The notes under the pieces were generated by a model, which saw only the letters and a list, made by a program, of their open reading frames with translations, searched no databases and had not been told where the DNA came from. From NCBI GenBank assembly GCA_964035545.1, contig OZ037765.1, forward strand, positions 21,328,995-21,392,994: a stretch of DNA of 64,000 bases, in the 5' to 3' direction. Positions 3,701-54,300 of the stretch are shown one piece after another (position 1 is the first letter of the stretch; every line of letters begins with the position of its first letter). Made by a program: the position numbers and the translations under genes. The DNA is from Bugula neritina. Lineage: Eukaryota > Animalia > Bryozoa.

Positions 3701-6700
3701 TTTGTTTTGTAGGCCTATATGTATTGTATTGTAATTGGTCAAAAAAGTAACATAATGTTTTTACTTAAACAATTATTTGCTAGTGCTTTATTTCTATTTT
3801 TGAGCTTTTCATTTTTCGCATTACAGTCCAGAACAATTTATACAACTTGGCATTAAATATTCAGCACAAATTGCATTAAAGGATTGCTCAATCTTAGTTT
3901 ATTACAATCACATTATAATTATGAACTATAATTTAATGTGTATGCAAACAATTGGGACTTTGCAAAGGGATATGTGCCTAGGAAACAGCTTTTCAAAATT
4001 CCAATTTTGAGGGCGGTAAAATTTTCAGCCATGAAAAAGAATAGCCTAATACGTGACGTGTGAACGCCAGTAACTATGCTGCACGTGCTAACTATAACGC
4101 TAGTATTCAAGGTTGCTGAGCACAATATCAACCAATAACGCTCAAGCAGTTACAGTGCGCTATATAGGTCAACTTTGGTGCGCCCGTAATATTGCACAAT
4201 CTGACCTAGTTTAGATCGATCGCAGGCATTCATCCTAAAGAATGCATGCTTTTGCAATGCTTTTTTCTAATGGTTACAAGCAAAATATAGCCTAATGTTA
4301 TTACATACATGTTATTGTAATAATTTTATGCGTAGAATGTTATGATTCGCTGCATGCAATTATTGGTGTGGGTTGTTAGCTGATTGAACACAGTGACTCT
4401 TTGTAGGAGGGTATTTATGCACAATAAATAAGAAATGTAATACTCACAATCCCCTTTATTTACTCCATAATATATATAAATCCAAAAATAGCAGTTAGGG
4501 AGGACAACTCCTTACATGTATAGAAAACTTACTAGTAAACTGGTAAACAAAGTATAAGATAATTAACTAAGTGTGTTATTGTCCTGGCTTGGTAGCTCCG
4601 AGATGTGTCCTGTTGTGCTGCTGGCTGAAGACTGACTCTACTGTGTTGAGGGCCTCCTTTTATACGTTGGGAAACATTTCCACTAGAATGTTCCGAGCGA
4701 ATTCGAGGGAATTCGCTCGAATCGCAGGGGATTCGCAGGGCTAGAATAAAAGAATCGCTCGAATCGAGCGAACTTCGCAGGGAAATCCCGGTTATCTTGA
4801 TTATATAAGTGTTCCTGTGAGCCGTCAGAAACAATAGCTAATCCAGTCACGTTAGTAGTAATAAGTAGCTGGGAATAATAGCTAATCCTATCATTGCCAA
4901 CATAACACTTAGCTGTTACAATACTATAGCTATGTAATGATGTATATCTAGGAAAACACGCATTCCATGGGAATGAAGTTAATAAAAATAAGGGAAATAC
5001 AGCCTTAGTTATACTATACACAATTTTACCACACACTCCCCTCCATCAGAAAGTACAACCCCTTTCTGATATAATTAAAAAAGAAATATAATAATAAAAA
5101 AAAGGAAGAAAATAAAAGAAAATACATGTAAGGGAGTTCTGGAATGGCTAATTTAGTCACACAAACAAAAATATATAAGATAGAAAATGTTAAGGGATAA
5201 TGAATTAATACACACAAGAATATATATTTACATAAAGAGAAGTGTCACCATTAGGGTCGAGCGGGCTGCTCCAGGTCCTGCAGTCTGCGTCGTATGCGTC
5301 CTAGTTCCTCAGAGATCCTGTCCAGGCCACGATATACATCCTCCAGACTCTCCGGGGGCCCACGGTGTGTGTGCCTAGTAGTATAGGGAGTGGTACTACG
5401 CGGCCTCGGTGCGCCCTGTCTACGCCGTTCTCTTCTAGTTCGGGCCGTTTCTCGTGGCGTCCAGCGGTCTCCTTCTGCAGTAGCTTCGGCTCGAGTTACC
5501 ACTACCCGGAGAGGCTGGGTGGGTGGCAACTCACAACTTGGGGGGTCTTCTGGCGGTTGCGTCTGACTAGTGGGTCGACAGGCCGGGAACCCTTGGGACA
5601 ACAGCTCCCTCTTCTTGGGATCGCTGATGTGGGGGAGAATCAGGTCCCTGAATTCTAGGTAATTGTCCGCATCTACATCAAAAATTCTGCCCGTGTGGCA
5701 GCGGCCAATACGTTGGTGCTTGAGCACGTAGTCACGCTGGAAGCTAAACTCCCCACACGGACAGAATGAGTTGACGTAATGTTGTTGGACGTGTATCCGT
5801 AGTCGCCTGTGTGAGGTAAAGCTCCGCCCACAGGTGGGGCACTTGGTGTTGCTAGGCTCCCCGCAGGCCTCAGCTATCAGGATCCGCGTCTTGGTGCTGG
5901 TCCAGTGAGACCGGGTGCTGAAAACGCGTGGTAATCCTAGCTCTCCAGCTCCTCCTAGTCCTTGAGGAGGGTCTGTGGTCTCAGATGAGGACAGGATAGA
6001 CTGTTCCTCCCCTTCATCTAGTCCAATATCGACGACAGTGGCAGGGGTCTCCGTATCTCCCTCCATTACTTGCTCCTGGGGTGTCGCGATTTCGGAGGAT
6101 CTTCCGAATGAGGTGAGAGTCGTAGAGGCAGGCTCTACGACTTTGTCGGTGTCTACAACAGAAATAGAGAGTTGAGCTGGTCGAGTCTGACCGATATCTC
6201 CAACTCGTGATGGCTGACTCACTCTATTATTAGTGATATCCTTATATGGCACTCGTCGCGATACTGCGAGCTGCCGGGGTGGGGGTAGAGTGACACTCTG
6301 GATGTCCTGGTCAAGTAGGTAATCTCTGTTGGGTGACTCTGACCCTCCAGAGTTCCAAGTGTGAGTTCTCCACATCTCGAACTTACTCTGGGAATCAGAG
6401 TTCGAGTTCCTACGGTCATCACCACCTAGACAATTCTCCGGTATAGGAGGTAATTCTAGTCTAGTGGACTTACCAGGGTGTGCGCCGGACTCTTCTTCAA
6501 CATTCAGGTGAGTGGGTGTAATATCCATATTTGTTAGATGGCGAGAGATTAAATTCCGTGTGGCGTGTGTGCTTGCTGCGATTGGAATGAACGAAGTATG
6601 CGTTCGTGGTTTATCGCGAGAGTCCCTCGCCTGGGTTTTTCCAACTTCGGGATCGGGTTTTTGTCCGATCTGGGTGAGGAACATCGAAGTGATCCCCTGC

Positions 6701-9700
6701 CGATATCGAGCCTCCCTGGTGGTGTGGTTAGGTGGTGAATAGTTGTAATACAAGGGGGGCCCTTCGTCCTCCGAGCTAAGGTATCCTTTCCCTATCTGGC
6801 CACAGTAATATTCCCCTAAGTACCCAGGAGGTCTTCGAGTCCTCTGGCTACGCCTTAGGCCTTCTGTGTCTGGCAAAGTGGCCTGTCCCCCAGGGTTGGT
6901 GGCTCTACTCTCTCCTACTTCCAGGGTAGGTGGGTCTAACCTCTCTGGTATGGCGGGGGGTGGTCTTACTGGTGGGGGCGCCTGAGGTGCTGGTTGCTCG
7001 GGGGGCTCTTGCACAGTGGGGGGTGGTTCTTGTGCTTCGGGGTTTCTCTCCGGTATGTTATAGGGAAGTTCCCACTCTCGGGTGGGGGGCGCCCTTCCTC
7101 CCCCGGTGGGTCGTCGTGCTGGCTCCAGGAGTGGTGGTGCTTGTCCTACTGCCCCAGGGCTGGCCCAGTACGGTTTTAAGCGTTTCTCGCTTTGGACGGA
7201 AATCTGTCCGGAGCGTTCTACGCGGTACGTGTGATTGGGTAGCACTTCGATGATGCAGTATGGTCCCACGAACTTGGGCTGTAATTTAGCCGACTGTCCG
7301 CGCTTCCTCCTGTAACTAATCATCCATACCCAATCGCCAGCCTGGTAGAGTGGGGGCTCGTCCGAGTCTTCCCCTCGCACTTGCCATTGTTTTTCCCTTA
7401 AGACCTCATGGGCCGTCCGCATCCTATCAACCAGCTCTCTCACGTATTCGTGGACAGGTCCCTCTGGGAGGGGGACGTGGTACGTGAGATGATCCGGGAC
7501 CCGCGTTTCCCGGCCTAGCATTAGGAAATTGGGTGTCTCCTGGGTGCTAGAGTGGGGAGTACTGCGATATGCACGCATGATCTGGGGTAGCACGGCGTCC
7601 CATTCTTCTTGGCTTTTCCCTAGTAGTAGACTTCTCAGGGCGTCCCCCAACATCCTGTTGTTGCGTTCCACTACGCCATTTCCTTGGGGGTGGTAGGGGG
7701 TGGTCCTACTTTGGTTGACCCCCCATACCCGACAGAGGTCCCTCATCAGCTGTGATTGGAACTGTGCCCCTTGATCTGTGTGGATCTGCTCCGGTAGCCC
7801 GAAATAGCAGAAAACGTGCTGATCTAAAGCTCGGGCTACCGTCGGGGCGGAGGCGTCCGGGATTGCCAAGGCATCTGCCCACCTAGTAAAATGATCCGTT
7901 AGTACCAGAATCCAGTTGTTTCCACGAGCGGACGTCGGCATGGGACCCACCAAGTCGACTGCCACTGTCTGCCACGGGCGACCGGCGTACAGCCTGCGCC
8001 GTCCCGTGGTCTCGGTAGAACGGCCATGCTTACTCGCCTGGCAGATTTCACATTGCCGGATCTGTAGCCTCACATCCCTTGTCATCCCAGGCCAGTACCA
8101 CCGCATCTGTAGGCACCGAATCACTCTACTGGTCCCCGCATGGGCCTGCTTGTGAGTCTCCCAGATGAGCTCTCTCCGGAGCGGGTGTGGGCACACAACC
8201 CGCTCCCGTTCCTGGTGTTGCCTGTCTGCTGCCAAGGAGATGGTTAGCAATCCGTCTGAGTTGAATTTGAGGGAGTCCCAGCGGTGGCAGAACTGTTGGA
8301 ATTCAACGCCCTTCTGCCGCTGCTCCTCCTCACCTGGCCGGCGCCCCTCCTTCTTGGCCCTGAATATCTCTCCCACTACCCCCGGCAGGGTTTCCTGTAA
8401 TCGGCACAAGTCCTGGACATTTCTGGCTAAGGTGGGGTTGACCCGAAGGGCCTGGACAGCATCTGAATGGACATCGGATTGCAGTCGGCCTTGTTCCCAC
8501 CTGTAGGCTTCTGTTTCCTTCAGTTGTGTCTCGACTTCCGAGCGGGCGGGTCCCCCGTCCCGCTTCTCTATATGGAGGCATTGCTTGCAGTCTCTCTCTG
8601 GACGACGGCTCAGACCATCAGCATTTCCATGCTTCCGGCCGGCGCGATGTTCAATCCGATATGAGAATTCTGCAAGTATTTCGAGCCACCTGGCGACCTG
8701 GCTGGAGGGTTCGGCCCGTTTGCACAGCCATATCAGTGATGCATGGTCAGTTCGTAATCTGAACGTTCTACCATATAGATATGGCCGGATATGCTTCACC
8801 GCCTTAACTACTGCTAGGAGTTCCTTCCTGGTCGTGCAGTAGTTTCTTTCGGCGGAGGAGAGGGCCTTGCTGTAGTACGCCACCACTACCTCGGTACCTC
8901 CTTGTACCTGGGACAACACAGCCCCCATACTGTGGTCGCTAGCGTCTGTATCCAAGATATACTGTTTGGTCGGGTCGGGGTAAGCCAGGATGGGTGCCTC
9001 CACTAGCCGGGCCTTGAGATGATCAAAAGCCTGTTGTTCTTCCTGAGTCCAACGCCACCGGACTCCTTTGGCGGTTAGCCGATTTAATGGCTGTGCCATA
9101 CCTGCGAATTCAGGGATATACTGCCGGTAATATCCCACCAGTCCTAGGAACGCTCTTAGTTCATGGATATCTTGGGGAACAGTCCAGTCTTGTACGGCCC
9201 GTACTTTCTCGGGGTCGGTGGCAACGCCGTCCCGGCTGACCACATGTCCGAGATATTTGACTTCCTGCTGCAGGAGAGCACATTTCGAGGGTTTAAGCTT
9301 TAGCCCGGCGGCCCGGAGACGGTCAAAGACCTCGCGCAGACGACTGACATGAGTCGAAAAGTCTGGCGAGATAACAATGACGTCGTCCAGATAGACTAGC
9401 AGCGTCTTCCAGTGTAACCCACTGAGGACCTGCTCCATGAGCCGCTGAAAGGTGGCTGGGGCGGATGTCAGCCCGAATGGCAACACCTTCCATCTCCAGA
9501 GGCCATCGCGGGTGATGAACGCGGCCTTGTCCTGTGCATCAGGACTGAGGGGTACTTGCCAGTATCCACTCAGTAGGTCCAGCGTGCTGAAGTATCTACT
9601 TCCCGCGAGGGCATCTAGCGACTCGTCTATCCGGGGGAGGGGGTAGGCATCCTGGATGGTGACGCTGTTCAACTTGCGGTAATCAACGCAGAATCTCCAG

Positions 9701-12700
9701 CTCCCATCCTTCTTTTTGACCAGAACGACTGGTGAGCTCCACGCACCGTGGGCTGGCTCAATCAGGTCCCGATCAAGCAAGTCCTGGACTTGCCGGCTAA
9801 CCTCCCTCTCCTTTTCCGGGCCCAGCCGTCGAGTGGGTTGTCGTATGGGGGCAGTCCCTGTTACTAGGGGTATCTCGTGCCGCACTACGTTAGTCAACCC
9901 CATGTCCTCGTCTCCTTGGCTGAATACATCTTGGTACTCTCGAAGTAACTGGGCCATCCGTTGGCGCTCCACGTTACTTCCACAACCACCACAGGCTCCC
10001 TTGTATAATTCCGCCACATGCTCTGGGACTGGTCCCATGCCAGACTCCAGGGGGCGACTCGGTGTCTCCGACGTCGCATCGAGTGTGGGCCCAACATCAG
10101 TCTCCTGAACCAAGTGATACCTGCCCACCAGTGAACCAGCCGATAACTTCACCGGCTCCGCGTAGGGGTTGATGCACTGCACCAGGAACTCTCCACGGCA
10201 GTCTAGCCGATTCAGGCTGTTTGCCAATTGTACCTTTCCGTGCATGCCCTCCACAACCCCTAGCTCAGAGATCTCCTTGCAGTTGACCCTGCACAGGAGT
10301 GTAGCCTGAGAGCGCCCGGGAATTAGGCTGTCCCGGACCACCTGTACGCCTCCTACCAGAGGCCTGCCGAACTTATCCACGCAGGTAAGTTCCTTGCCAT
10401 CCACCACTATTGCTGACTTGTTGAAGTCCATGTGGCATTGGTGCTCCTCAAGGAAGGGCATGCCAAGAATAGCATCCTCCTTCAGGTGACTCACTATGAA
10501 GGTCTCGTGGATTACGAGATCCCGAACTCTTCCGGGTAGTGAGATGAGGCCGTAAAATGGTATGCTCGATCCGTCCGCCAACGTACCGTGCTCACCATTA
10601 TACGGCTTGAGGCTTTCCCGCTCCCGAGCGCCAAGAGTGTCGAAGAGACGCCTACTCAGAAGGTTTGTGGTGCACCCAGTGTCCAACAGGAAGGTGGCAG
10701 CTTTGCCCGCAATCTTGCCGGGCAGGAAATAGCTGCTTCCGTATGGTTGGGTGTGCTTCGAGTAGTCTGTCTCTGGGGGAGACACTTCCTGGGTCTGGAC
10801 GGTAGGCCTCTTACACGTCCTAGGGACCACGGGGGTTTTCTGAGGTTTGGAGGGCAGTCGGGGGAAATCCCGGTCGGAATCAGTATCCTCCTCCACAACC
10901 TCCTCGGGTAACCCCGCGAACCGGTTGTTGAGTGGCCAAGCTGGAGGTTCGGGCAGGCCTTTCGGCCTCCAAGTTCTCCGGGGAGCTTGCCATTCGGATG
11001 AGGGGGGTTTCGTCTGCGCCTCCCTGGGTGCAGAGTAAACCCTCCTCGGGTGAGTCTGGAGACTCGGCCTGCGGGTGGCGGAGATTACCGCAGGCCTTGG
11101 GTGTTTAACGGACCGCTGCGTCCTCGGGGACAGTCTCGTTGCACATGACCTGTTGTCCCACACTTCCAACACGTGAGAGAAGACCCTTCGGGGCGACTAC
11201 TACGTGGCTGATTCGGCCGGTTAGTAGTTTGGGCCCGTCTCAGGGCCTTAACTTCGGCCTGTAGATCTCGCACCACCTCCAGTACCATGGAGACTTCGGC
11301 TGAGGTCGATGGGGTAGGTGCAGTAGCTGCTACCCTAGGCTCTAACTGAGCGTCCTTGTTGGGCTGACTACCGTATGACCGATCCGGTCTGTCAGTAGTT
11401 TGGGCCCGTCGCAATGTTGCGATCTCTTCTTGCAGTTTGTCCACCACCTCCAATACCATGGAGAGTTCGGGTGGGGTTGGGGGTGTAGTGGCGGCGGCCG
11501 CTACTTGAGGCCTCGGCCGAATGTCTTCGGCAGCCTCTCCCCAGTCTGACTCGACTCGTCGGGCACTGCTGTCACAGTCCTGACTCCCGCCGATCTGGTA
11601 GTACGCCTTTCCTCTGGTCAGAGCAGCCTCAATGGTGTCGACCCCAGCTGCCAAGAGATACCGTTGCAGGCTCAGGTTATTGAGCGATTGCAGGAAGATA
11701 TCAAAGGTGATGGCCTGGCGTGACTCCAGGTCTACGTTACCGTAGGCTACCTGGACTAGCTGCTCCACTTTGTTGGCGTGATCCTGTAGTGAGACCTTAG
11801 GGTCTCGTCGGAGTCCTTGTAGGCGGGCTCTCGCGTCCCGGACGGTAAGTCCGAAGCGGCCGCGCAGAGCCTCAATGATGTGGTCCCTATTCGGGCCTAC
11901 CGCGTAGGGTTTGGCTCGACCTGTCAGGCAGGACCGTAGTTGCAGTAATTCCACCTGGGCCGGCCACTGGGAGGCCACGGCCACCTCGCGGAATTCCTGT
12001 AGAAATTGTTCTACATTTCCTTCACCGTCGAAGACTGGCGCTTTAAGGCGGAACCTGTCACCAGGTGGAGCCTGTACAGCTGCCCTGTCTTCCCAGAGAG
12101 TCCGAATCAATGTCTCTAGGGTGAAGCGTCCTCCTGCTGGTTCATCATCAGGCCCGAGCTCTGGCGCTGGCCTCAATGGATCCATTGTTGTCTCTCCCCG
12201 TAGGGGAGCATCAGCTTAGTCTGTACCAGACGATTATCCCACTGCTGCCACCAGTGTAATAATTTTATGCGTAGAATGTTATGATTCGCTGCATGCAATT
12301 ATTGGTGTGGGTTGTTAGCTGATTGAACACAGTGACTCTTTGTAGGAGGGTATTTATGCACAATAAATAAGAAATGTAATACTCACAATCCCCTTTATTT
12401 ACTCCATAATATATATAAATCCAAAAATAGCAGTTAGGGAGGACAACTCCTTACATGTATAGAAAACTTACTAGTAAACTGGTAAACAAAGTATAAGATA
12501 ATTAACTAAGTGTGTTATTGTCCTGGCTTGGTAGCTCCGAGATGTGTCCTGTTGTGCTGCTGGCTGAAGACTGACTCTACTGTGTTGAGGGCCTCCTTTT
12601 ATACGTTGGGAAACATTTCCACTAGAATGTTCCGAGCGAATTCGAGGGAATTCGCTCGAATCGCAGGGGATTCGCAGGGCTAGAATAAAAGAATCGCTCG

Positions 12701-21700: not shown

Positions 21701-24700
21701 ATGTAATACAACATTATTTTGGAATGAGTCATCTGTCTTCATGATCAAATTATCAAATCCCAAAGGTTTGTCAAAAGCACTGCAAGTTTATATATATTTG
21801 GTGTATATATAGCTTTACATTATCCATCTGTACAAACTGTTTAAAATTCAAAATGGCAGCTGAGGCAAGTTTCAAAATTATTTTTAGCAGCTGCTACAAA
21901 AACGGGCAAAGTTAAAAATAAGTCGCTCAATCAGCTGTATTATAACTGACTGAAGTTTATGTATTGTTTATAACTTAATTTTTGTAGACTCTCCCAGCAT
22001 TGAAGTCTTTCTGCGTATACGCAGCACTGGGAATCATAAGTCTGTTTATCATACAGTCTTCTTTCTTTGTTGCTTGGTTAACAATTGACCAACGTCGCCA
22101 GGATACCTCGAGAGATGCCTGCTGTATTTGGATCAAATACGTAAACTTTAAACCAAACCAGTGTAGTCAAAGAGCATTCTTGCCATGGTTTCTGAAAAAG
22201 TACTTTTCTCCAAGTCTTTTATCTCTTCCAATTAAAGTATGTTTATCAAATGTCTGTCAAATTTTGAATTATTGGAAATGTTTTGCAACATCAAAGATTT
22301 TTTAATAGCGTTAGTTCTATCAAAAAATTGTTTGTGTAATAGAACAATCAGGCTCCAAACACAAAATTACACGCTCATGTTAAGCAACAACATCTTTTTG
22401 ATGAACAAAATTTTTATTATAGACATGTTATTTATATTATTTATTAGATAAGCCTCTTCAGATAAACTGCTGAAAACTTGTGTCCCCAAATGACCTTACA
22501 AACGATAGTAAACTAAAACTGGTCAATTATTGATGTTTTGAAAAACTATATTAACTTGTTCTTGCTTTACAAATTGACATCTGGAACATATTGGATGCTA
22601 ATTGTGAGTTATATAACTATAATCTGATGGAAACTAGCAATGCAGCATGCCAGTATTGTATGGCATGTAATAGATTTGAAATGTATTGCATATGTATACC
22701 ATATATGTTTTATTCTCACTATCAATAGCACTTCGTTATTTCTTTTATATCATTACTTGAAATAGGATGAGTAATTTCTCTAAATGTTTCGGCACTTAGA
22801 TGTGTAGCCACATTTATAATGTCTTCTACTTTACATAAATCCTTGTATACATCTGTGTTGCAGACATTTGTAACAAGTCTCCTGATTGGTATGTTGGCCA
22901 TCAGTGCATATGGGACATACATGCTGAAAACTGATTCAGATTTAGCCTGGTTCTTGCCCAGAAATTCTTATCTTACGACGTTCTTAGAAACACAAGAAGA
23001 ATATTTCAACAGAGGAATAATGGCTAATTTATATCTAGGCAAGAGAAATTATATATAAATGCAAATCAACTTAAATACTAACTTGGTTTATCGGGAATAA
23101 ATAAATCAATGTTATTTATTATTTAAAATTTATTTGTTTGATTTATTTACAGGAGAGATCGATTATTTCAGAGCCAATACTGAAATTTATAACATGACTT
23201 CTGAATTGGAAGATAGTAAATTTGTAACAGCCAACAGCATGGCCAGTTGGCAAGCAGAATTTAACATGTGGTTGAAAGATGAAGGTGAATTTGACAAAAA
23301 CCTGATAGACGAGAGTAAGTCCAGACACCGTTTCAAGTTCCAAACCCTCCTCTATGATGTAGATTAAAGTTTCATAATTGACTTCCATGTGACCTAGTAC
23401 AAGCGCTTGTGTTAAATATTTCAAGACTTTTAGGATGTTATTTTTTACTTAATTTCTTATGTTAATATTATATAATTGACGGTTCTCTTTTTTCTTGTAC
23501 TTTAGATTCTTACCCTATTGGGGAGACGGAATATTACTTGCTACTTGACAAGTATTTGATGCATAATGGCCGCCAATATCTTGCGTCAGTCAAATGGAAT
23601 GATACAGACAATAAAAACTTCAGTTATGTTATGGTAATTTCTTTTTTTTATAAATGAAGACTGTTGCATAAATCGCAATAAATTTAGTATAGAAAGATAT
23701 TTTTTAAACAGCTTTACTCATTTTTGTGTAATAAATTAAATCATTATGCTATGTATAATAGTTGGTGCATTATAATTTTAAAACCTGCTTTTATTTTTAG
23801 GCATCTAAGATCAGTTTTATGGTGAAGAAGTTAGACACCTCGGATGATGATACAGAGGCTTTAAATTTTTTTGAAGATTTATGTAAAAGATATTTCCCAA
23901 ATAAGTCATTTGTATGGGCAGTGCAATTTAGAACCTGGGAAACTAATCGTGTAATTCAACGAGAGCTTTACGTCAATATCGGACTAGCATTTGCAGCTGT
24001 GTTCGTTGTGACTTTATTGCTGGTGGCTAATCTTTTCTCTTGCATTCTCGTCTGCGTCTGTGTAATATTTACACTGGTGAGTTCGCACAAGTAGCGGTTC
24101 CTAGATTCAAATGTGTAAAGCCATGCTTTGCTTTAGACTCATTTTTATATCTGAAAGAGTCGTCGCAATGCCTGGTATTATAAATAAAAAATATTACAAA
24201 CGTTCGTATTTAGGTTTATACCCTGAATAAAGCAATAAAGTTATTTTTATATTATGGCATGTTAGGTAAAGTAAATGAACAATTACACAGTTGTAAATGA
24301 CCGTCAAGCATAGGATGTTAGAGCATGGATGTGTGATAATCCTGCAGGCAGTATATGAGATCAGTTGAAACATGTGTGCACTGGTTGCTTTATCCTAGAT
24401 TTTGACAATATATTACTTGATAATTATTAATAATGTAGAGGGATATTGCATGCATTCTGTTCTTTATAGTGCCATGTTTGTTTTCAGGTGAATGTTTGTG
24501 GGTTTATGCATTTCTGGGGATTAACTATTGATACACTTACATCTATCTTATTGATTCTGTCCATTGGCTTGGCTATTGATTACTCAGCGCATATTGGTCA
24601 TAAATTTATGACCATACATGGAAATCGCAATGGTAAGTTATTACTCATTAGCTGTACTACAACTCGTCTATAAATAGCTATATATGCACCATATGAAAAC

Positions 24701-34691: not shown

Positions 34692-34828
34692 GATAAGTTT
34701 GCTATAAGTATAGTATGATTATATTGTGAGAAACAGCTATCAATTTTTTTTTAATTCCTTGATATATTTTCAAAACAAAATGAAGTGAAAAAGACTAATT
34801 TCATTATTTGCAGTTGTTTCTCTTGGCT

Positions 34829-35322
34829 ATGTCAACAATTAAACCTGTTAGATCAGCTAAAGAAAAAGCTATAGCCTGCAATACATTAATCTGCCTGCTT
34901 CAAGGACTTATTGGTCAAAGAGCTACAATAGAACTGAGAAATGAGTCTAGCGTCACTGGGCTCATTCTAGATGTAGATATTTATATGAACGTATCTATGT
35001 CCGAGGTTTCTTATACTGGTACAGGGAGTAGCACTGTGAATTTGGAGGCATTTTACGTTCGTGGAAAAAATATTAGATTTGTCTTCATTCCGGACCATGT
35101 AAGTATTCTCATCAAATGTTTTAATGTAAAATAAAACATTTTCTCAAGAGTGTTTTGGCATTTTTCATTAACTTTGAGCTATTCATTTTGTTCTAGATTG
35201 ACATTTTAAGCACTATTAAAAAGCAAGTTACTCCAAGAAGATACATTCGTCCTCATCATTCCAAGAGGGAAAATAGATACAAAATTATATCGGAAGCCCT
35301 TAGTCGCCCAGCATCTTCCTAG
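34829..35322 (+). CDS. LSM10: U7 snRNA-associated Sm-like protein LSm10
   Basis: Exons 34829-35098 and 35197-35322; NTLICLLQGLIGQRATIELRNESSVTG...VDIYMNV...FYVRGKNIRFVFIPD matches the LSm10 Sm1/Sm2 pattern. Confidence 0.9.
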
Positions 35323-43667: not shown

Positions 43668-44955
43668 ATGAATTTTTGCACGTGGGAAAATGAGAAGTTC
43701 AAAGACTTCTTCAAACCAGGTTTGTAAGCCTATATCCTTTTACTTAATTTATATATATAAACATTTTTTATTCTAACAGTTTTGTTCGACTTCTGTTAGA
43801 AAATGAATAATGTTATATATTGCATATTTATGCTAGGTAGTACATAATAATATATGTAGAATAATACGATTAGTCATCTTATTGCTCAATTTATACAACT
43901 GGCTTTAAGTATGCACATTTTGATATGATTTTATACTAATGCATACTAATTATTTAGCTGAGTCAAGTAAAAAATTATGTTGTAAGGTATTAAAAGTTAT
44001 TCGCTTTACTGACTTCTCAAGAGACGTGCTAGAAAACAATATAATAGCAACTATGTATTGTACAACAAACACACTTTGTACCACATTTCAGCTATTCAGC
44101 TATAATTCATTCTTTTGTTGTAGGAAAGTATGTGTGTGTCAAATGTGGTCATGACCTGTTCTCTAGTAATGCTAAATTCAAGCACTCATCGCCCTGGCCG
44201 GCCTTTTCAGAAACTTTAAGACCAGATAGTCTATATAAAAAACCAGAAACTGCAACTGCTTTTAAGGTAAATAAGGTTTTTTTTCAGCTTTTTGTATGGA
44301 ATAAAAATTTAATTTTCATTATTATGTGAATATGTGGTTTTTATTTCCATATGTCGGGTAGCCGCTTTTTAATGTTTTAGCATACATCTGTTGAATATTT
44401 ACCTTGCAATACTTTCAAGAGCATAAGATTGGTTTAAATGGACTCATAGATACTAGTGTATGAGTAGAAATTTATATTGTCAGCTTGGTAAGCTGTCTTC
44501 AGAATTTTCTGTATGTCTTGTATTTGTTCTCTGTGACTGTAGATTCACTGTGGAAATTGTAAGCATCCTCTTGGCCATCAGTTTCTCGGTGATGGTCTGA
44601 AAGGTGGTTCACGTTTCTGAATATTCAGTGACTCCATGAAGTTCGTCCCAAGTGAGTTTTACATAAAGTACTAGCAGCCACAACTGTTAGTTTAGAAACT
44701 TAAACTTAGCTAGCTATTTGCTGCATTTTTCTAATAAAATTAAGAAACACTTCTGTTCAACTTTGATTGAGTTTTAATGACTATTTAATAAAGTAAAATT
44801 CAAGTTCACTTTGAGTTCAGTAGAATTGCAGTTTTTATTTACTACTACATTTGGTAATTCTAGTGCTTATCCTTCATTTAGCAGAAAATGAGGAAAGTTT
44901 CCAAATTGAAGAACCAAAAAAATCTACAAAACAAATTTGCTGTGTTATATTATAA
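43668..44955 (+). CDS. MSRB1: Selenoprotein methionine-R-sulfoxide reductase B1 (SelR/SelX), about 124 aa, Sec91 encoded by TGA 44618-44620
   Basis: Exons 43668-43719, 44124-44266, 44543-44651, 44885(or 44882)-44955 give MNFCTWENEKFKDFFKPGKYVCVKCGHDLFSSNAKFKHSSPWPAFSETLRPDSLYKKPETATAFKIHCGNCKHPLGHQFLGDGLKGGSRF-U-IFSDSMKFVPKNEESFQIEEPKKSTKQICCVIL. Two Zn-binding CxxC, Cys4 and SRFUIFS are collinear with vertebrate MsrB1. Confidence 0.95.
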
Positions 44956-46521
44956 ATGCAGTGAAATTATGTAAAGTATGTTACCTGTGGTGTTATTTCT
45001 GCTTTTGTCTCAAACTGTTAGTTTGATTTATTTTCGTTTGTGTTTATGTTTGAAGTTAATTTAGAATGGAGCTGTGTTCTTTCAGAACATAAACTTTATT
45101 TTTCTTGAAGTTTGTGTCTATTCAAGTAACTTATTTGTAGTTATGAGAAAGTTAAACAGTTTGCAGTGTATACTACCGTAACCCTGAATGTGGTGTTTTT
45201 TACAAGCGGAATCAGAAGTGGTAAACAAACGGCTTCAAACTTACTATAAAAACAAACATTGGTCACTAGTAGCATTTAACTTTTATGTAATGTTGGTATT
45301 CATTTTATGAGCAATGGGCTGTTTTAGGCTCTTTATCTAAAAAGTCTTTATATCTCCATTGATCCTGCTGTCTTGGTGGAGTAATGACTTTAGACGATCA
45401 TGTTTTACACAGCGAGCTGTTATGTATTACCATCTTTTTCTCCCAACACTTCGTAATTGATTCATGAAAATATAACTTTATTATATATTCCAAGGGAAGC
45501 ATTAGCTACATTTACACAATTTTCAGGCTACCAAAACTGATCACTGAAGTTTGAACATAGCTGGGTACAATTTCTAGTTGAAAACTGTCCTTTTTCAATT
45601 ACACCTGAATTATCTGTGCAGCATCATATCTCAAATGACAAAGGAAAATTTGAGCATCTATATGCATTGAGAATTTACATGTTATTTTACAATTCAATCT
45701 TTGTATTCAAAAATGGCACTTTGTAGTGTAGGCTATATATAAAATGCAGTTAGTTTTTCATTGATTACTTCACTGTACTACCAGGATGTGTATTGATGGG
45801 CATTTGGCCTTAGCCTATTCTAGGTAACCCGTTGGTAACATGAATCTTATGTTTATAGCCTCTCTAATTACTACTTAGTGAATATCTGTAAGCTTGAATT
45901 TGATACTATATAATATGCATTAGCAAGATGAGTAGGCAATACTTATTACTAGAATAGATGTTGTGATGAGTCAATAAGATTTATACTTAGTGAAAGTGCT
46001 GATGTCATTGTGAGACTGTAAATTCCTTTAGAGATATAGTAAACTTCTGTTCAAGACCCATAAAGTGTATTACGTGTGACTTTGGAAATCAATTTGGTTA
46101 TATCAGTTGATTTTAAGATGTGACGTAGGTCTTAATACTTAGTGCTAGGCATGACTCATTCAAAACAAGGAAGTGGTTTTGTAATCCCACCTCATGTTAT
46201 TTTGGTGATTCTAGAAATGTTGTAAGTAATTGTTGTATTTTGTAGATTAAAATGGTTGAGAGACATCATGGAGCGTTTAATTTAGCTGAGCTAAAACTTA
46301 GATAATAAAACTGAATTTATCATACTATGACACTTTTATCAGTCAATTGACTTGGAATTAAATGAATATTTTGACCTTAACTTAACTTATTTAAATTATT
46401 ATCACATGCATAAATGTTATCTCTATTAAATTTTGATTATACATTTTTTCAACAGTATTGCTACAATCATGCTTATAAGATGTGATCATATGTTTTTTCT
46501 TGTGTTGCAAAGCCAAATTCT

Positions 46522-46598
46522 GCTGTAGTGATGCCAATGACGTACTTAAGCTCCACTCAATTTGAGCGCTCATGTATTGAAAAAATATATACTACAGT
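46522..46598 (+). promoter_or_regulatory. Candidate SECIS element (type II, CC apical variant) in the MSRB1 3' UTR
   Basis: Helix I GCTGTAGTG/TACTACAGT; core ATGAC...TGAA; helix II GTACTTAAGC/GCTCATGTAT (8 of 10 paired); spacing ATGA-N12-CC-N24-GA; apical mini-helix CTCA/TGAG. Confidence 0.7.
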
Positions 46599-46740
46599 TG
46601 AGTTTGGTTTTTGCAGCGACTTTTTTTGTGCAAGTTTCAAAAATTGTTTTTATTTTTAGACACTAATTTGTTAAAATAGTCAATATTTTAAATTATAGAA
46701 ATGTGCAATTTTTGCCTCTACTAATAATTGAATTACCATC

Positions 46741-46746
46741 AATAAA
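46741..46746 (+). terminator. Candidate distal polyadenylation signal of MSRB1
   Basis: First AATAAA seen downstream of the SECIS candidate. Confidence 0.4.
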
Positions 46747-49663
46747 ACCCAAAGAAATTAAGAAATCAATTAACACTTCTCAATGGTTTGTGTAGACCTC
46801 TTAATTTAATTTCCAGTTACTTTGTTTTACACTCTCAATTCAGCATTCTGTATAAGGGGATGTATTTTTATTAGCAATAGAAAGCTGCATTGTGCTTTAC
46901 TACTTAATAACATTGAAAAGCTTATTCTTCAGGTAAGTATTGAAGCTTAAAGCTTTGCAGATGGTCAATAAATTTGGGCTCACTATACCCGTTGTAGCAA
47001 GTCATATAGCCATAGCAATTGGATTTTCAGGGTCAAGTTATTTGCCATTTAACTCCATTGATTGTATTTATGGCATCTAATGCAATGCCAAGCCCAATGC
47101 AACTCACTTTCAACTTTGTGTAAACTGCAAGTAGTAATGAGTCGAAATTGAGGAAATTGCTCATGAACTTTTAAAGGTGAATATCTCCCTACAGATTTGT
47201 AGAAAGTGTGTTGACCTTGTGGCATTTAGATGCTGGTTTAAGTTATAACTATGCTTATAGATGTACCATTACAGCGGTAACATCCAAAGCAGCTGTAGCC
47301 AGACTACAACAACAAATTATATTTGAGCATCAATGTTTCATACTCATAAAAAGTATATAATATTATAAAACAATTGCAGTTTCTACCATAAAAATATACA
47401 ATAGTTTTAGGATCACTAGCAAGGCTTACATTAAAATTCCACATAAACACATTGTACATATATTTTACATAGGCACGCACTGTTGCAGGAGCTTTTTGAT
47501 TGTTTGAGAAAAGCTTTTGTGAAAGCTTTTGCAATAGCTTTTTACTGGTAGTTTTTGTTTAATGAGTCGGTACAGCTCAATTTTCCTCTTGTTAAAGATG
47601 CAGGCAACTTAAACTTTATTGTCCAAATAATTGTAAGTATTATACTATCTTTTGTTTTTAACTTCATAAATTAAAAGTTCTGTCAGAAATATCTGTTTTG
47701 ATTAATGTTGATTTAACAAGATGCTTTTACGGTTATATGTTACAGTTTTGTAAGAAAAATAAACTGTTGGCATTAGGCAGAAGATTGAGTTGTGGCCTGC
47801 TTTTGTGTCCTCCATCCATTCATCCTGCATCTGTGTAACCAGCATACAACATCCGTGTTGACACAGTAACAATTACTTTGAGAGAGGCATCCGTGCCATT
47901 CAGCATCCATGCTTACATCACTTTCACCTATTGAGAAGGGTTTTAATACCTCTTGATCATTCTATTTGTGCAAAAAGTGCTAATATTATGTGTCTACTCT
48001 GACTATTGCTCTGGTTCGTGACACTTTATTTCCAGATTACTTGACGCTATAAAAAACGACATTAAACCAATGCCAGAAACTGCAATCCTGTGCCTATACT
48101 TAAAAGTCTGAGGTGCACCAGTAATTCAACTCTAGTATTTGGTGTCCAAATTTTTTAACACCCTCAACCAAGCCGCATTACAGACACAAGCATCTCAAGC
48201 ATTTTTTTAATGTGGAAGTTGGAAGTCACTCATGCTAAACCTAAAATTGAGCAATCACCAATGGCATCTACACATATGACAACGTAGAAAAAATATGCTT
48301 TATAAAGTTATCTCGTTTTTATGGATACTGTGTACTATTGCATTAGTATGATTACATAATAATAATAATAATACAGTATAATAATATTATTATACAGAGA
48401 GTTAGAATATACACAGAAGTTGTCTGTCTTCTGTTCGAAACTAAACCATCACACTGTTTTGCTATTTGTTGATTTTTAGTATAGTTGTTTAATTTTTAAA
48501 TTTAATAATAGCTTTATAAATTTAATAATTTTGTTTATTGCATTAAAAGGCCATAAATTTCAAATAGGTAATTCTCCGAATATGGGAGAAACAGCTTATT
48601 CCTATGCATATTGCTCGTTGTTTCCTGTAACTCAACATAACGGATAACTCTACGACAATTAGCACTAAAATTATTAATAATTTAATTTTATTCTAATACT
48701 AATGGTAATACTACAACTTTATATAAATATCGATAATGCTAGTATTGATATATTATATTTGCTATTGATGTAAATACTTAGAATTACCATCTTTTACTAG
48801 TACTAATACTAATTAGTAATTGTAGTCATCTGGGCTTATTTATTAACGCAGGCATTGATTATATTTATTATGAATATGACTTAGTCTTATTCAGTTATTG
48901 ACTAAAAGTCAAAGTAAAATGCAGTTGGAGCTGGACTTAGTGTTACTGTTAGTGTTGGACGTTAGTGTTAGTGTTACACTTACAGGTTGCCGTTAGTGTT
49001 AGAATAAGACTTGCTCTAACTCTTAGTCTTATTCTCAGTCTTGTAGTTGTTGATAGTCTTACTCTTAGTAGTTAGTACTTTAACTTACTCAATAACTTTG
49101 TACTTGTAGTTAAACTTACAGTTACACTTCCAGTGACGGGGTGAGTCTCACTGCCAGTGTAGCAACAAACAAGTAGCAGTGCCACTGTCAGTGTCTGTGT
49201 GAGTGTACTTCCACGATGTCTTTGTTTATGGTCAGCTCACTGGCACTCAGTTTTACACTGACACTGGTGACTCTACACCAGTGAAATTCAAACTCAAAGT
49301 AATGAAATATCAATGTGATATTATAGTTATGCTAAATCATGCAGAATGATTATGTTTATGTTCATTTATCAGGCTACATAGCCAGTTTAACATTAACTAT
49401 CACTATCAGGTTACATAGCCAGCAAAACACAGCTAATGCCATGCTAATAGTTATATATAAACATCAAGAGTGAAGAACTCATATTATTAATATCATTACA
49501 TTTACTCTGAAGTGATACCTTAATAGTAGTATTGAACTAAAACACTGTTGAATACACAATGATATTTATTTCATTACATTTTCACCATACTATCTGTTCG
49601 CATAAAGATGTAGACTGTAACTTTAATTTAAATGGGATAATCTTTTGTTTATATTAATATTTC

Positions 49664-51364: not shown

Positions 51365-54300
51365 ATGGATGATCAAAACACTGACTCTGACTCTCATTCT
51401 GTCACTTCTACTCTATCAGCATCAAGTGCAAGCAGCAAGCAAGTACGGGTTTAATTTTAGTGCTGTATTATTTTTTGAGCTGTATATTCAGCATTTCGTA
51501 ATTAGAACATTTAAGAAATTGTGAAATAGGACTTATAATTGTTTATTTTCTGCTGGCCATGTACTTTGTTTCAAAATTATGCTGTTAATATTTGCTTACA
51601 TGTATATTGTGCTAAGGTTCAATTGCTACCTCAACAATACAGAAAATGTAGGCAGTTTATAATAAGATTATATAATTATGTTTTTACTTAGGATAATTAT
51701 ATATGACAATGACCGTTGACTGCGATAGGTTCTAATTAAAAACTTATACAAATTATATGCTCGTGTAAATTAACAGAATTTTATTGTTGCTTAAAGTATT
51801 GGGTCTATATTGAGCTTGCTCTCTACTCTTTCTTTGTCTTTATTATTTGAAAGAAGTATGGAACCATGCATGCTAAGGATGCTTCTACCAGCTCCTCCAA
51901 ACCATTACCAACCAGCACTAAGCGGAAACCGGAAGATGAAGGCAAAGTAAATTCTACTCCGAAAAGAAAGAAGGGAGAAAGTGCTGATTCTGCTGGAACT
52001 GGTACTGTGACGCCAAATTCCAGCAGTGCCAGGAAAGTACGTATTTATAGTATATTATAGTATAGTATATTATGTAGATATGTAGCATAATTATTTTTTG
52101 TTAAAGCAAGTCTGAATAGTCATATGTATGCACTCACTCCACACTGGTGTGCGCACGAACACACATGCACACTCACGCACACACCATTACTTTCAATAAT
52201 TTTGTCTAGATGCCATGAAATGTCTATTGCTATCATGTTTTGTGAAAAAAATGAAACTTTATAACTCACTTTTTCACGCTTATAATAATTTGTTGAAATT
52301 ACAAAATCTACATCAAAACTAAGTTTTACCATCTTTTTTGAGCATTATTTCAAAATCCACACAAGTGTTCACAATGAAACCCGTTATATATATTTTATCA
52401 TGCTGCTAATTATTAATAGTTATTAGCTTTCTCACTACCTTGTGCTTGAACTTAATATCACACTAGAATCTAGAACATTTAGTCAGTTTTTCGTCATAAA
52501 ATTGCTGTTGAAATTCTTTTAAAATGTTTTCTGCAATTGTTGTTAAGGCAGCACCACTATCAGAGAGACAGCAAATGGCAATTGCTTTGGCGATGTCAGC
52601 ACAAGAGTCAGGGGGGTCATCTCCAGTTCACAACCCTTCCCCAAGTGCTAATGCACCAGATACTACGCCTCGCTCAGCCATGTTGAGGAAAGTGAACAGG
52701 AGAAATGAAAAGGGGGAATCCCCTCTCCATTTAGCCACCATCAGGGGAGATGTGGATGGAATGAAGAAGCTGCTGAAGGCTGGTGCAGGAGTCAATGTTC
52801 CTGATTATGCTGGTCAGTATAGGATTATTCAAATAACTGGAAGTGCGGGAAATTTTGTAGTACCTTGGAAGTCGCGATCTCTAATGTAGTTATGTATGAT
52901 AGTTGCCAGCCGTAGAGTGATGCTTTTGAAAATGTCATCTTTATAATATCCTATAATTATTAAAATATTTATGAATGATCCATATAGAGACAAATTATTT
53001 TATTTGTTTGCCTTTTTTTAATCTTTTATGGTTTGCATAATAATTTCTGCGCATTGAGTGTGCTGGGCAATTTTTACTAATCTGAGGCCTTCATTGCCAT
53101 ATATGCAGTGTGTGGCTGTAGAAAGACTGCTCTGTTAACTATGTGTGTGGGATTTTCTTTGTGTCAGGCTGGACAGCTCTACATGAGGCGTGTAACCATG
53201 GTTTTGTCAATGCCGCCAAGCTACTATTGAGAAAAGGAGCTAATGTGAACGCACAAGGGCTCGATAATGACACTCCATTGCATGATGCTGCCATTAATGG
53301 GCACCCTGAGGTAAGTTTCTACTATGTCAAGGTCATCAGTGGCCATTACCATTCGTTCATAAGTAAATATCTCTCAGCATGTGCCGTGTTCTATGTACTG
53401 CTTACTGCTTGTAGCTGGTGAGCCTGTTACTCAAATATGGAGCCAATGCCAACCAAGCCAACAGCAAAGGTCAAAGTCCGTTGGATGTTGCATTAAATGA
53501 TGACATCACTAAGCTGCTAAAAGGAGAGACTGTCTTCAGAATAGACAGCGATGAAAGTGACCAGTCAGCGTCTTCTCCCGAGGGCATGCTGTCAAAAGAA
53601 GAGGAGGCTAGCACGCCTACGCCGCTGCCTAACTTTGCCCAGTCAGCTTGCAAACCCAGAGAGACGGAATCCTCTCTCGACAACCCACAGCTGCCATCAG
53701 AAGATGCAAAGTCAGCAGAAGTGTCAAGTAGAAAGAGCGCTAGCAGTGCTGCTTTACAAGATACCACAGCTCTTCAATCTAGACCTTCTTCTACTGGCTT
53801 CAGTCAAGGTATGGTAAATTTCCTCTATTGGTGTGTAGCTCAGTTATGTTGTGGCTATGTTTGATAGTAGTTTATTTACACTTTGTACTGAAATAATTAA
53901 AATAGAGTTCATAAATTACATATTTGCTAGATGTTAAGCATAAATCTTTGATTCAATCAATGACTGCAATAGGCATAGTGTTACTTTGCTATCAGTTGTT
54001 GCCACAGTTACGTTAGATTTTGTTATTTTTATCCATATGTGTATACTATTGGGAGTTATTTATCTTCAAAAAATGAGAAAACAACTCCATCATAGATGTT
54101 AGAAGGTTAATGGCCGAACTATCTTAGTCATAACCTAAGTACTACGGTAGAGTTGTATACTCATGCCACTCAGAGCTGTTGATGTTGTATACCACTCTAT
54201 TTCAATATGCTATTGATTTGCAAAACTAATTTATCAACTTGGATTAAAAAAACAATTATAATGACAATATTGGTCAGTTTGAATTGGAAATAAATTTGAT

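Follow-up and report, generated by a model that had tools for sequence, protein, structure and literature searches.

A putative selenocysteine-containing MsrB1 gene of Bugula neritina with a CC-type SECIS element and a candidate CaaX-ending segment in its third intron

The MsrB1 gene and its dominant mRNA

The window considered here is the whole stretch of 64,000 nucleotides of Bugula neritina DNA that was analysed (contig OZ037765.1), and positions are counted from its first letter. As judged from its sequence, the locus of interest is a four-exon gene for the selenocysteine (Sec)-containing MsrB1 of this animal, with the following parts:

43668..43719, forward strand: coding exon 1, with the ATG start; RNA joint 43719 to 44124 in four runs
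44124..44266, forward strand: exon 2, with the first CxxC and SSPWP; Pfam and PDB matches, RNA joints
44543..44651, forward strand: exon 3, with the second CxxC and RF-UGA-IFS; RNA joints
44618..44620, forward strand: in-frame UGA, the putative Sec codon from alignment to 2kv1; kept in relatives
46246..47469 (end approximate), forward strand: RNA-supported last exon, which completes an Asn codon and contains the TAA stop (46248-46250) and the 3' UTR

Homology searches were run exon by exon, and the exons were joined locally for a check of the frame only. Exon 2 matches the SelR family of Pfam (E 1e-8) and, among PDB chains, MsrB1 3mao with an E of 2e-16, compared with 1e-4 for MsrB3 and 1e-2 for MsrB2; the best matches of exon 3 are likewise MsrB1. 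Because the part of exon 3 upstream of the UGA aligns with residues 69-94 of the MsrB1 chain 2kv1, the UGA at 44618 corresponds to residue 95, and its position is identical in every relative read. Both CxxC motifs are present (CVKC and CGNC), and Cys4, which is encoded in exon 1, occupies an N-terminal position known from other MsrB1s. The locus consequently has the features by which a Sec-containing MsrB1 is recognised: a SelR domain nearest to MsrB1, two CxxC motifs together with a UGA at the catalytic site, and a SECIS element within the mRNA's 3' UTR (see below). An earlier note, made from the letters of the window, had proposed a Sec-MsrB1 here, and both the SelR match and the placement of the UGA at 2kv1 residue 95 bear this out.

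Mammalian MsrB1 (SelR/SelX; 3mao, 2kv1), which reduces MICAL-oxidised actin (PMC7961861), shares with the Bugula protein the SelR domain, the two CxxC motifs, and the UGA at the residue-95 position followed by IFS. Unlike it, the main Bugula form stops two residues past the FVP-type motif (FVPN), and the Bugula SECIS carries CC at the site of the consensus AA. In addition, only the Bugula gene, of all the MsrB1s read, shows a possible intronic CaaX exon.

The structure of the dominant mRNA is seen in RNA contigs. A joint from 44651 to 46246 is present in all four runs, which come from four studies (depths 318, 447, 243, and 5), and removes a third intron of 1594 nt with GT..AG ends; introns 1 and 2 are also confirmed by contigs of all four runs, and contigs of the last exon extend to 47166 and 47469. 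Because the exon at 46246 contributes just the Asn and the stop, the protein encoded is 102 aa long and ends in FVPN, a C-terminus without a CaaX motif.

A CC-type SECIS element

Downstream of the stop codon, comparison with the relatives brings out a candidate SECIS element:

46537..46581, forward strand: type II SECIS element of the AUGA_CC_GA form, with the flanks of helix I at about 46520-46600
L003:8227, L005:855, L016:2612, L018:3229, and L034:2766: its counterparts at the loci of relatives, conserved with covariation

The element lies within the RNA-supported last exon and would consist of an AUGA core, a helix II of 10 pairs, an unpaired UCCA, a helix III of 4 pairs, and a GA core, with the CC located 12 bases past the AUGA at the site usually held by AA. 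UCCA stands in place of the unpaired AA in all close relatives, none of which has the canonical AA. The element is present at the locus of every close relative that extends far enough, and a whole-genome search finds it once. In an alignment of five sequences 92% of the cells are paired and three pairs show two-sided change; as controls, 13 of 500 shuffles paired as highly, and slid alignments paired at 14-46%. The L034 allele repairs two positions of helix II. (An Rfam scan for SECIS gave no match at E up to 10, and a scan with an AA-type pattern returned one weak candidate, at 47137, which was set aside when the comparison of relatives yielded the present one.) With its covariation, this predicted CC-type SECIS is the firmest of the additional results, and its position, 287 nt past the stop, together with the covariation suggests that it would direct the recoding of the UGA at 44618 to Sec.

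The CC type of SECIS element is on record for the SelM and SelO of mammals, and among vertebrates the form is said to have evolved in mammals (PMC3316567); human TrxR3 is likewise listed with one (PMC2761289). In a survey of invertebrate SECIS elements nearly all were of the AUGA_AA or GUGA_AA form (PMC3473315), and a literature search located no paper on SECIS elements of bryozoans. The Bugula element resembles those of SelM and SelO in its AUGA, the 12-nt spacing, the apical CC, and the GA, and differs from them in belonging to an invertebrate MsrB1. The presence of CC for AA in a lophotrochozoan MsrB1, across several lineages, would mean that the CC form also originated outside the mammals, and the series offers natural material on the role of the apical bases. 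It would also be one reason why standard scans miss this MsrB1 gene.

The CCVIL segment within intron 3

The third intron of the dominant mRNA contains a second possible end for the protein:

44841..44881, forward strand: candidate acceptor, made up of a branch-like TAAT, a pyrimidine tract, and an AG; unchanged between two lineages
44882..44955, forward strand: candidate alternative last coding segment, an open frame ending in CCVIL-stop

Two tandem AG acceptors, preceding 44882 and 44885, are both in frame with the phase-1 donor that follows 44651. From either AG the tail would end ...KKSTKQICCVIL before the TAA at 44953-44955, with the two Cys codons of the tail at 44938-44943. CVIL is a textbook GGTase-I motif. 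The earlier note was right to read it as such and to place it in frame directly before a stop; the same arrangement is seen at the loci L033 and L034 of a second lineage, described below. That note had also joined the donor at 44651 to this segment as a terminal exon. The phase-1 GT donor and the frame are as it described them, while the terminal status is not, given that the RNA joins 46246.

The simplest form of that proposal, in which the last exon is constitutively the CCVIL one and a lipid anchor is carried by all full-length MsrB1, has in its favour that the acceptor of the segment is in frame and is the first acceptor-like AG past the donor. Against this, every joint that leaves 44651 in the RNA goes to 46246 and orthologues take the distal exon; the proposal is barely credible in general and is refuted for the RNA samples examined. 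A joint from 44651 to 44882 or 44885, which the earlier note had named as its check, was seen in none of the contigs from the four runs of four studies, and in 4/4 runs the transcripts use another last exon.

What the RNA leaves room for is an alternative 3' acceptor that is minor or restricted to a stage or tissue. Such an isoform would be 124-125 aa long, would make up no more than about 1.5% in bulk tissue, and would share the SECIS, which lies 1582 nt (1.58 kb) past its stop. The contigs used (Logan) lose rare junctions, and because of this an isoform that makes up about 1.5% or less could go unseen in these data. The absence of its junctions from all four studies nonetheless tells against it, as does the deepest run, X1, in which exon 3 has a depth of about 1700 and no contig covers 44861-45011. 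Contigs of runs X3 and X4 do cover the CCVIL stretch (depths 6.3 and 3.7, or 1.4-1.5% of the main form), but they are unspliced: they begin upstream of the AG by 41 nt or more, and the loose end of the X3 contig is the intron allele of L034. Mismatch counts of 15 and 18 assign both runs to an L034-like lineage, whose CCVIL frame is intact. The onset of coverage near the acceptor was weighed as a sign of an alternative exon and set aside, since the uncovered segments are less than 88% alike in the sequenced lineage; the likeness cut-off of 88% shapes intronic coverage in X3 and X4 and has no bearing on exon boundaries.

Other properties of the sequence are those that a minor isoform would need. 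A branch-like A lies at -25/-28, and the pyrimidine tract matches those of the acceptors in use in quality. The window contains no AATAAA or ATTAAA between 44955 and 46246, so a transcript could reach the SECIS, but L034 carries one AATAAA between the stop of the tail and the distal exon. Genes resembling prenyltransferase beta subunits are present in the genome.

How often such a tail arises by chance was gauged with simulated introns of the same length and composition. At some acceptor-like AG, a strict CaaX tail was found in 0.85% of them; for a loose tail the figure was 3.6%, for CC plus CaaX 0.05%, and this last value speaks for the isoform. A CaaX tail is by this estimate unusual for a single intron, while tens to hundreds would be expected by chance genome-wide, assuming roughly a hundred thousand introns (our own estimate). 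A search of the genome (216,009,554 bases in 321 contigs, with a mitochondrial contig of 15,248 bases) found no second copy of the CaaX stretch, and its origin as a repeat or a fragment of a paralogous gene was rejected on this ground.

The CCVIL segment in a second lineage of B. neritina

A search with the frame of the tail found P0215, on two assemblies (L033 and L034) of a second B. neritina lineage; since these are apparently one sample, the case for conservation rests on one comparison. In the comparison of positions 43779-47460 with L034, public RNA runs and JGI contigs lie about 10% away from the present assembly in introns, with many indels, a divergence that fits cryptic lineages within B. 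neritina. Between the introns of the window and those of the second lineage there are about 10 events for every 100 bases, with 29 indels in 1889 aligned bases. In the second lineage both AGs are nevertheless present, the frame is open, and CCVIL is intact, and this retention of acceptor, frame, and motif across such divergence argues for a minor isoform. From 44841 to 44955 there are 5 substitutions and no indel; three are synonymous (one in the last Leu) and the other two replace Thr with Ser and Ile with Thr. Positions 44841-44912 form an identical run of 72 nt, which is exceeded only in exon 2.

Under neutral change, CC plus CaaX survived with a frequency of 0.12 in simulations (about 12-15%), at most five events within 115 nt had a p of 0.025-0.04 (about 3%), and the two together had a probability of 0.011. 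An identical run of 72 nt anywhere in the intron has a p of 0.07, and the synonymous excess of the CCVIL segment, at p 0.07, is not significant; these two values, with a single independent lineage compared, weigh against the isoform. The conservation of the block between two lineages is accordingly suggestive, not decisive.

The same comparison bears on a different reading, that the conserved block is a splicing-regulatory element or decoy acceptor which would slow or shunt the removal of intron 3 and thereby tune the level of MsrB1, the CaaX motif being incidental. Identity is greatest at the acceptor and through the first 30 coding bases, not at the motif, and the two non-synonymous changes among the five sit near the CaaX, as this reading would have it. 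The intronic coverage in X3 and X4, however, follows the 88% cut-off and gives no sign of selective retention, and we regard a regulatory block as very unlikely. The minus strand of the block contains no long frame to account for its conservation.

The distal acceptor in relatives

The relatives whose loci were compared are taken to be bryozoans, on the grounds of the SECIS that they share and of a 78-89% identity in exon 2. Four spliced mRNAs (L005-L007 and L015) end in FVPK. At the genomic loci L003, L016, L018, and L022 the donor is the same, and AGTAA comes after a distal acceptor; this site is homologous to the ATTAA at 46246 and shares its acceptor context. None of these four loci matched the CaaX stretch significantly, and the absence of the CaaX exon from three more distant related lineages counts against a minor isoform; the earlier note had looked to close orthologues for a CaaX, and what they show is FVPK, reached via the homologous distal acceptor. 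Six more MsrB1 mRNAs also end without CaaX. L016 alone has an AG that would yield a tail ending CHFM-stop, which is lacking in its sister alleles and shows, at the level of sequence, that such tails can originate by chance.

Intron 3 of L016 (1815-1870), L018, and L022 contains two copies of a TGCTGTGT motif that resembles the bases of the window encoding CCV. As a remnant exon it was rejected: its scores lie within the shuffled background (2, 51, 60, and 64 of 200), and no conserved stop follows it.

Interpretation of the two ends of MsrB1

Taken together, these observations argue that the gene probably makes a soluble MsrB1 of 102 aa via the acceptor at 46246, and that the CCVIL frame of intron 3 is probably without functional use. 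With the UGA recoded through the CC-type SECIS, the FVPN protein, which has no lipid anchor, would be expected from its family to be soluble and to reduce Met-R-sulfoxide; the CCVIL frame would have survived in two lineages by chance or via another function of the block. The spliced product of the dominant mRNA does not have a CaaX C-terminus, and because the motif ends no observed transcript, the gene is not shown to be that of a CaaX protein. The proposal that this lineage tethers MsrB1 to membranes thus fails for the main protein, on the evidence of the RNA and of three related lineages. Tethering survives solely as a possible property of a minor isoform, backed by the conservation in the second lineage.

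A geranylgeranylated, membrane-placed isoform of this kind is the lesser possibility, one that we hold open with some doubt; this weighting is a judgement and was not computed: a likelihood ratio of roughly 20-50 is set against the low prior given to a CaaX exon that is confined to one lineage and goes unseen in bulk RNA. It is conceivable, at a similarly guarded level, that CVIL would be geranylgeranylated after Sec insertion, with the neighbouring Cys (as a palmitoyl site) and lysines serving as the second signal. The argument that the anchor needs read-through of the UGA as Sec is logically sound and is relevant to this candidate isoform only. The proximity to cortical actin, MICAL, or NADPH oxidases that the earlier note suggested is a conjecture.

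The nearest model for such a switch is OAS1, in which a CaaX motif with Leu, of the type that is preferentially geranylgeranylated, is found in one splice isoform only and sends p46, and not p42, to membranes (PMC8357416). As in OAS1, a single gene would confine CaaX(L) to one, here putative, isoform. The OAS1 isoform is proven and abundant, whereas its Bugula counterpart has no junction seen and would also depend on recoding of a UGA. A second precedent is MIEN1/Rdx12, a redox protein with a C-terminal CVIL that is geranylgeranylated (PMC6738349) and whose SelW2 relatives carry Sec (PMC3316567). These proteins have the Rdx thioredoxin-like fold and not that of SelR, and the CaaX of MIEN1 is its normal C-terminus, unlike the situation in the dominant Bugula mRNA. 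The novelty that the earlier note suggested for a prenylated selenoprotein is weakened by MIEN1/Rdx12 and SelW2, as well as by an exon of MIEN1 type in the same genome that ends CIIL. Literature searches found no report of an MsrB with a prenyl anchor and no paper joining MsrB1, CaaX, and selenoprotein. If the minor isoform is real, it would be such an MsrB, a membrane methionine sulfoxide reductase gated by both splicing and selenium, and would provide a test case for membrane-local repair of methionine.

The MIEN1/SelW2-like exons lie at about 2280700-2284550 on the reverse strand of contig C9 of the assembly (G000; locus L039), and the last of them ends CIIL-stop. A weak AA-type SECIS candidate is found downstream, and no Sec exon was found in the 9.9 kb examined.

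Other features of the window and the assembly

Elsewhere, the window contains an LTR retroelement on the reverse strand (5251-12185), with long open frames for a gag zinc knuckle, protease, RT, RNase H, and integrase, and, on the forward strand, exons of sterol-sensing-domain (22000-22305), LSM (34808-35134), and ankyrin-repeat (52524-53864) genes. In the assembly, a second SelR match is located at G000:C133:32559-32936; its frame contains TAG and TAA and no TGA, the pattern that a cobiont using a ciliate-type code would show. Several different COX1 sequences are also present in the assembly. On a chromosome lies a full-length COX1 copy (G000:C6:11174072-11175412) whose score is near that of the mitochondrial one and which is probably a recent nuclear insertion.
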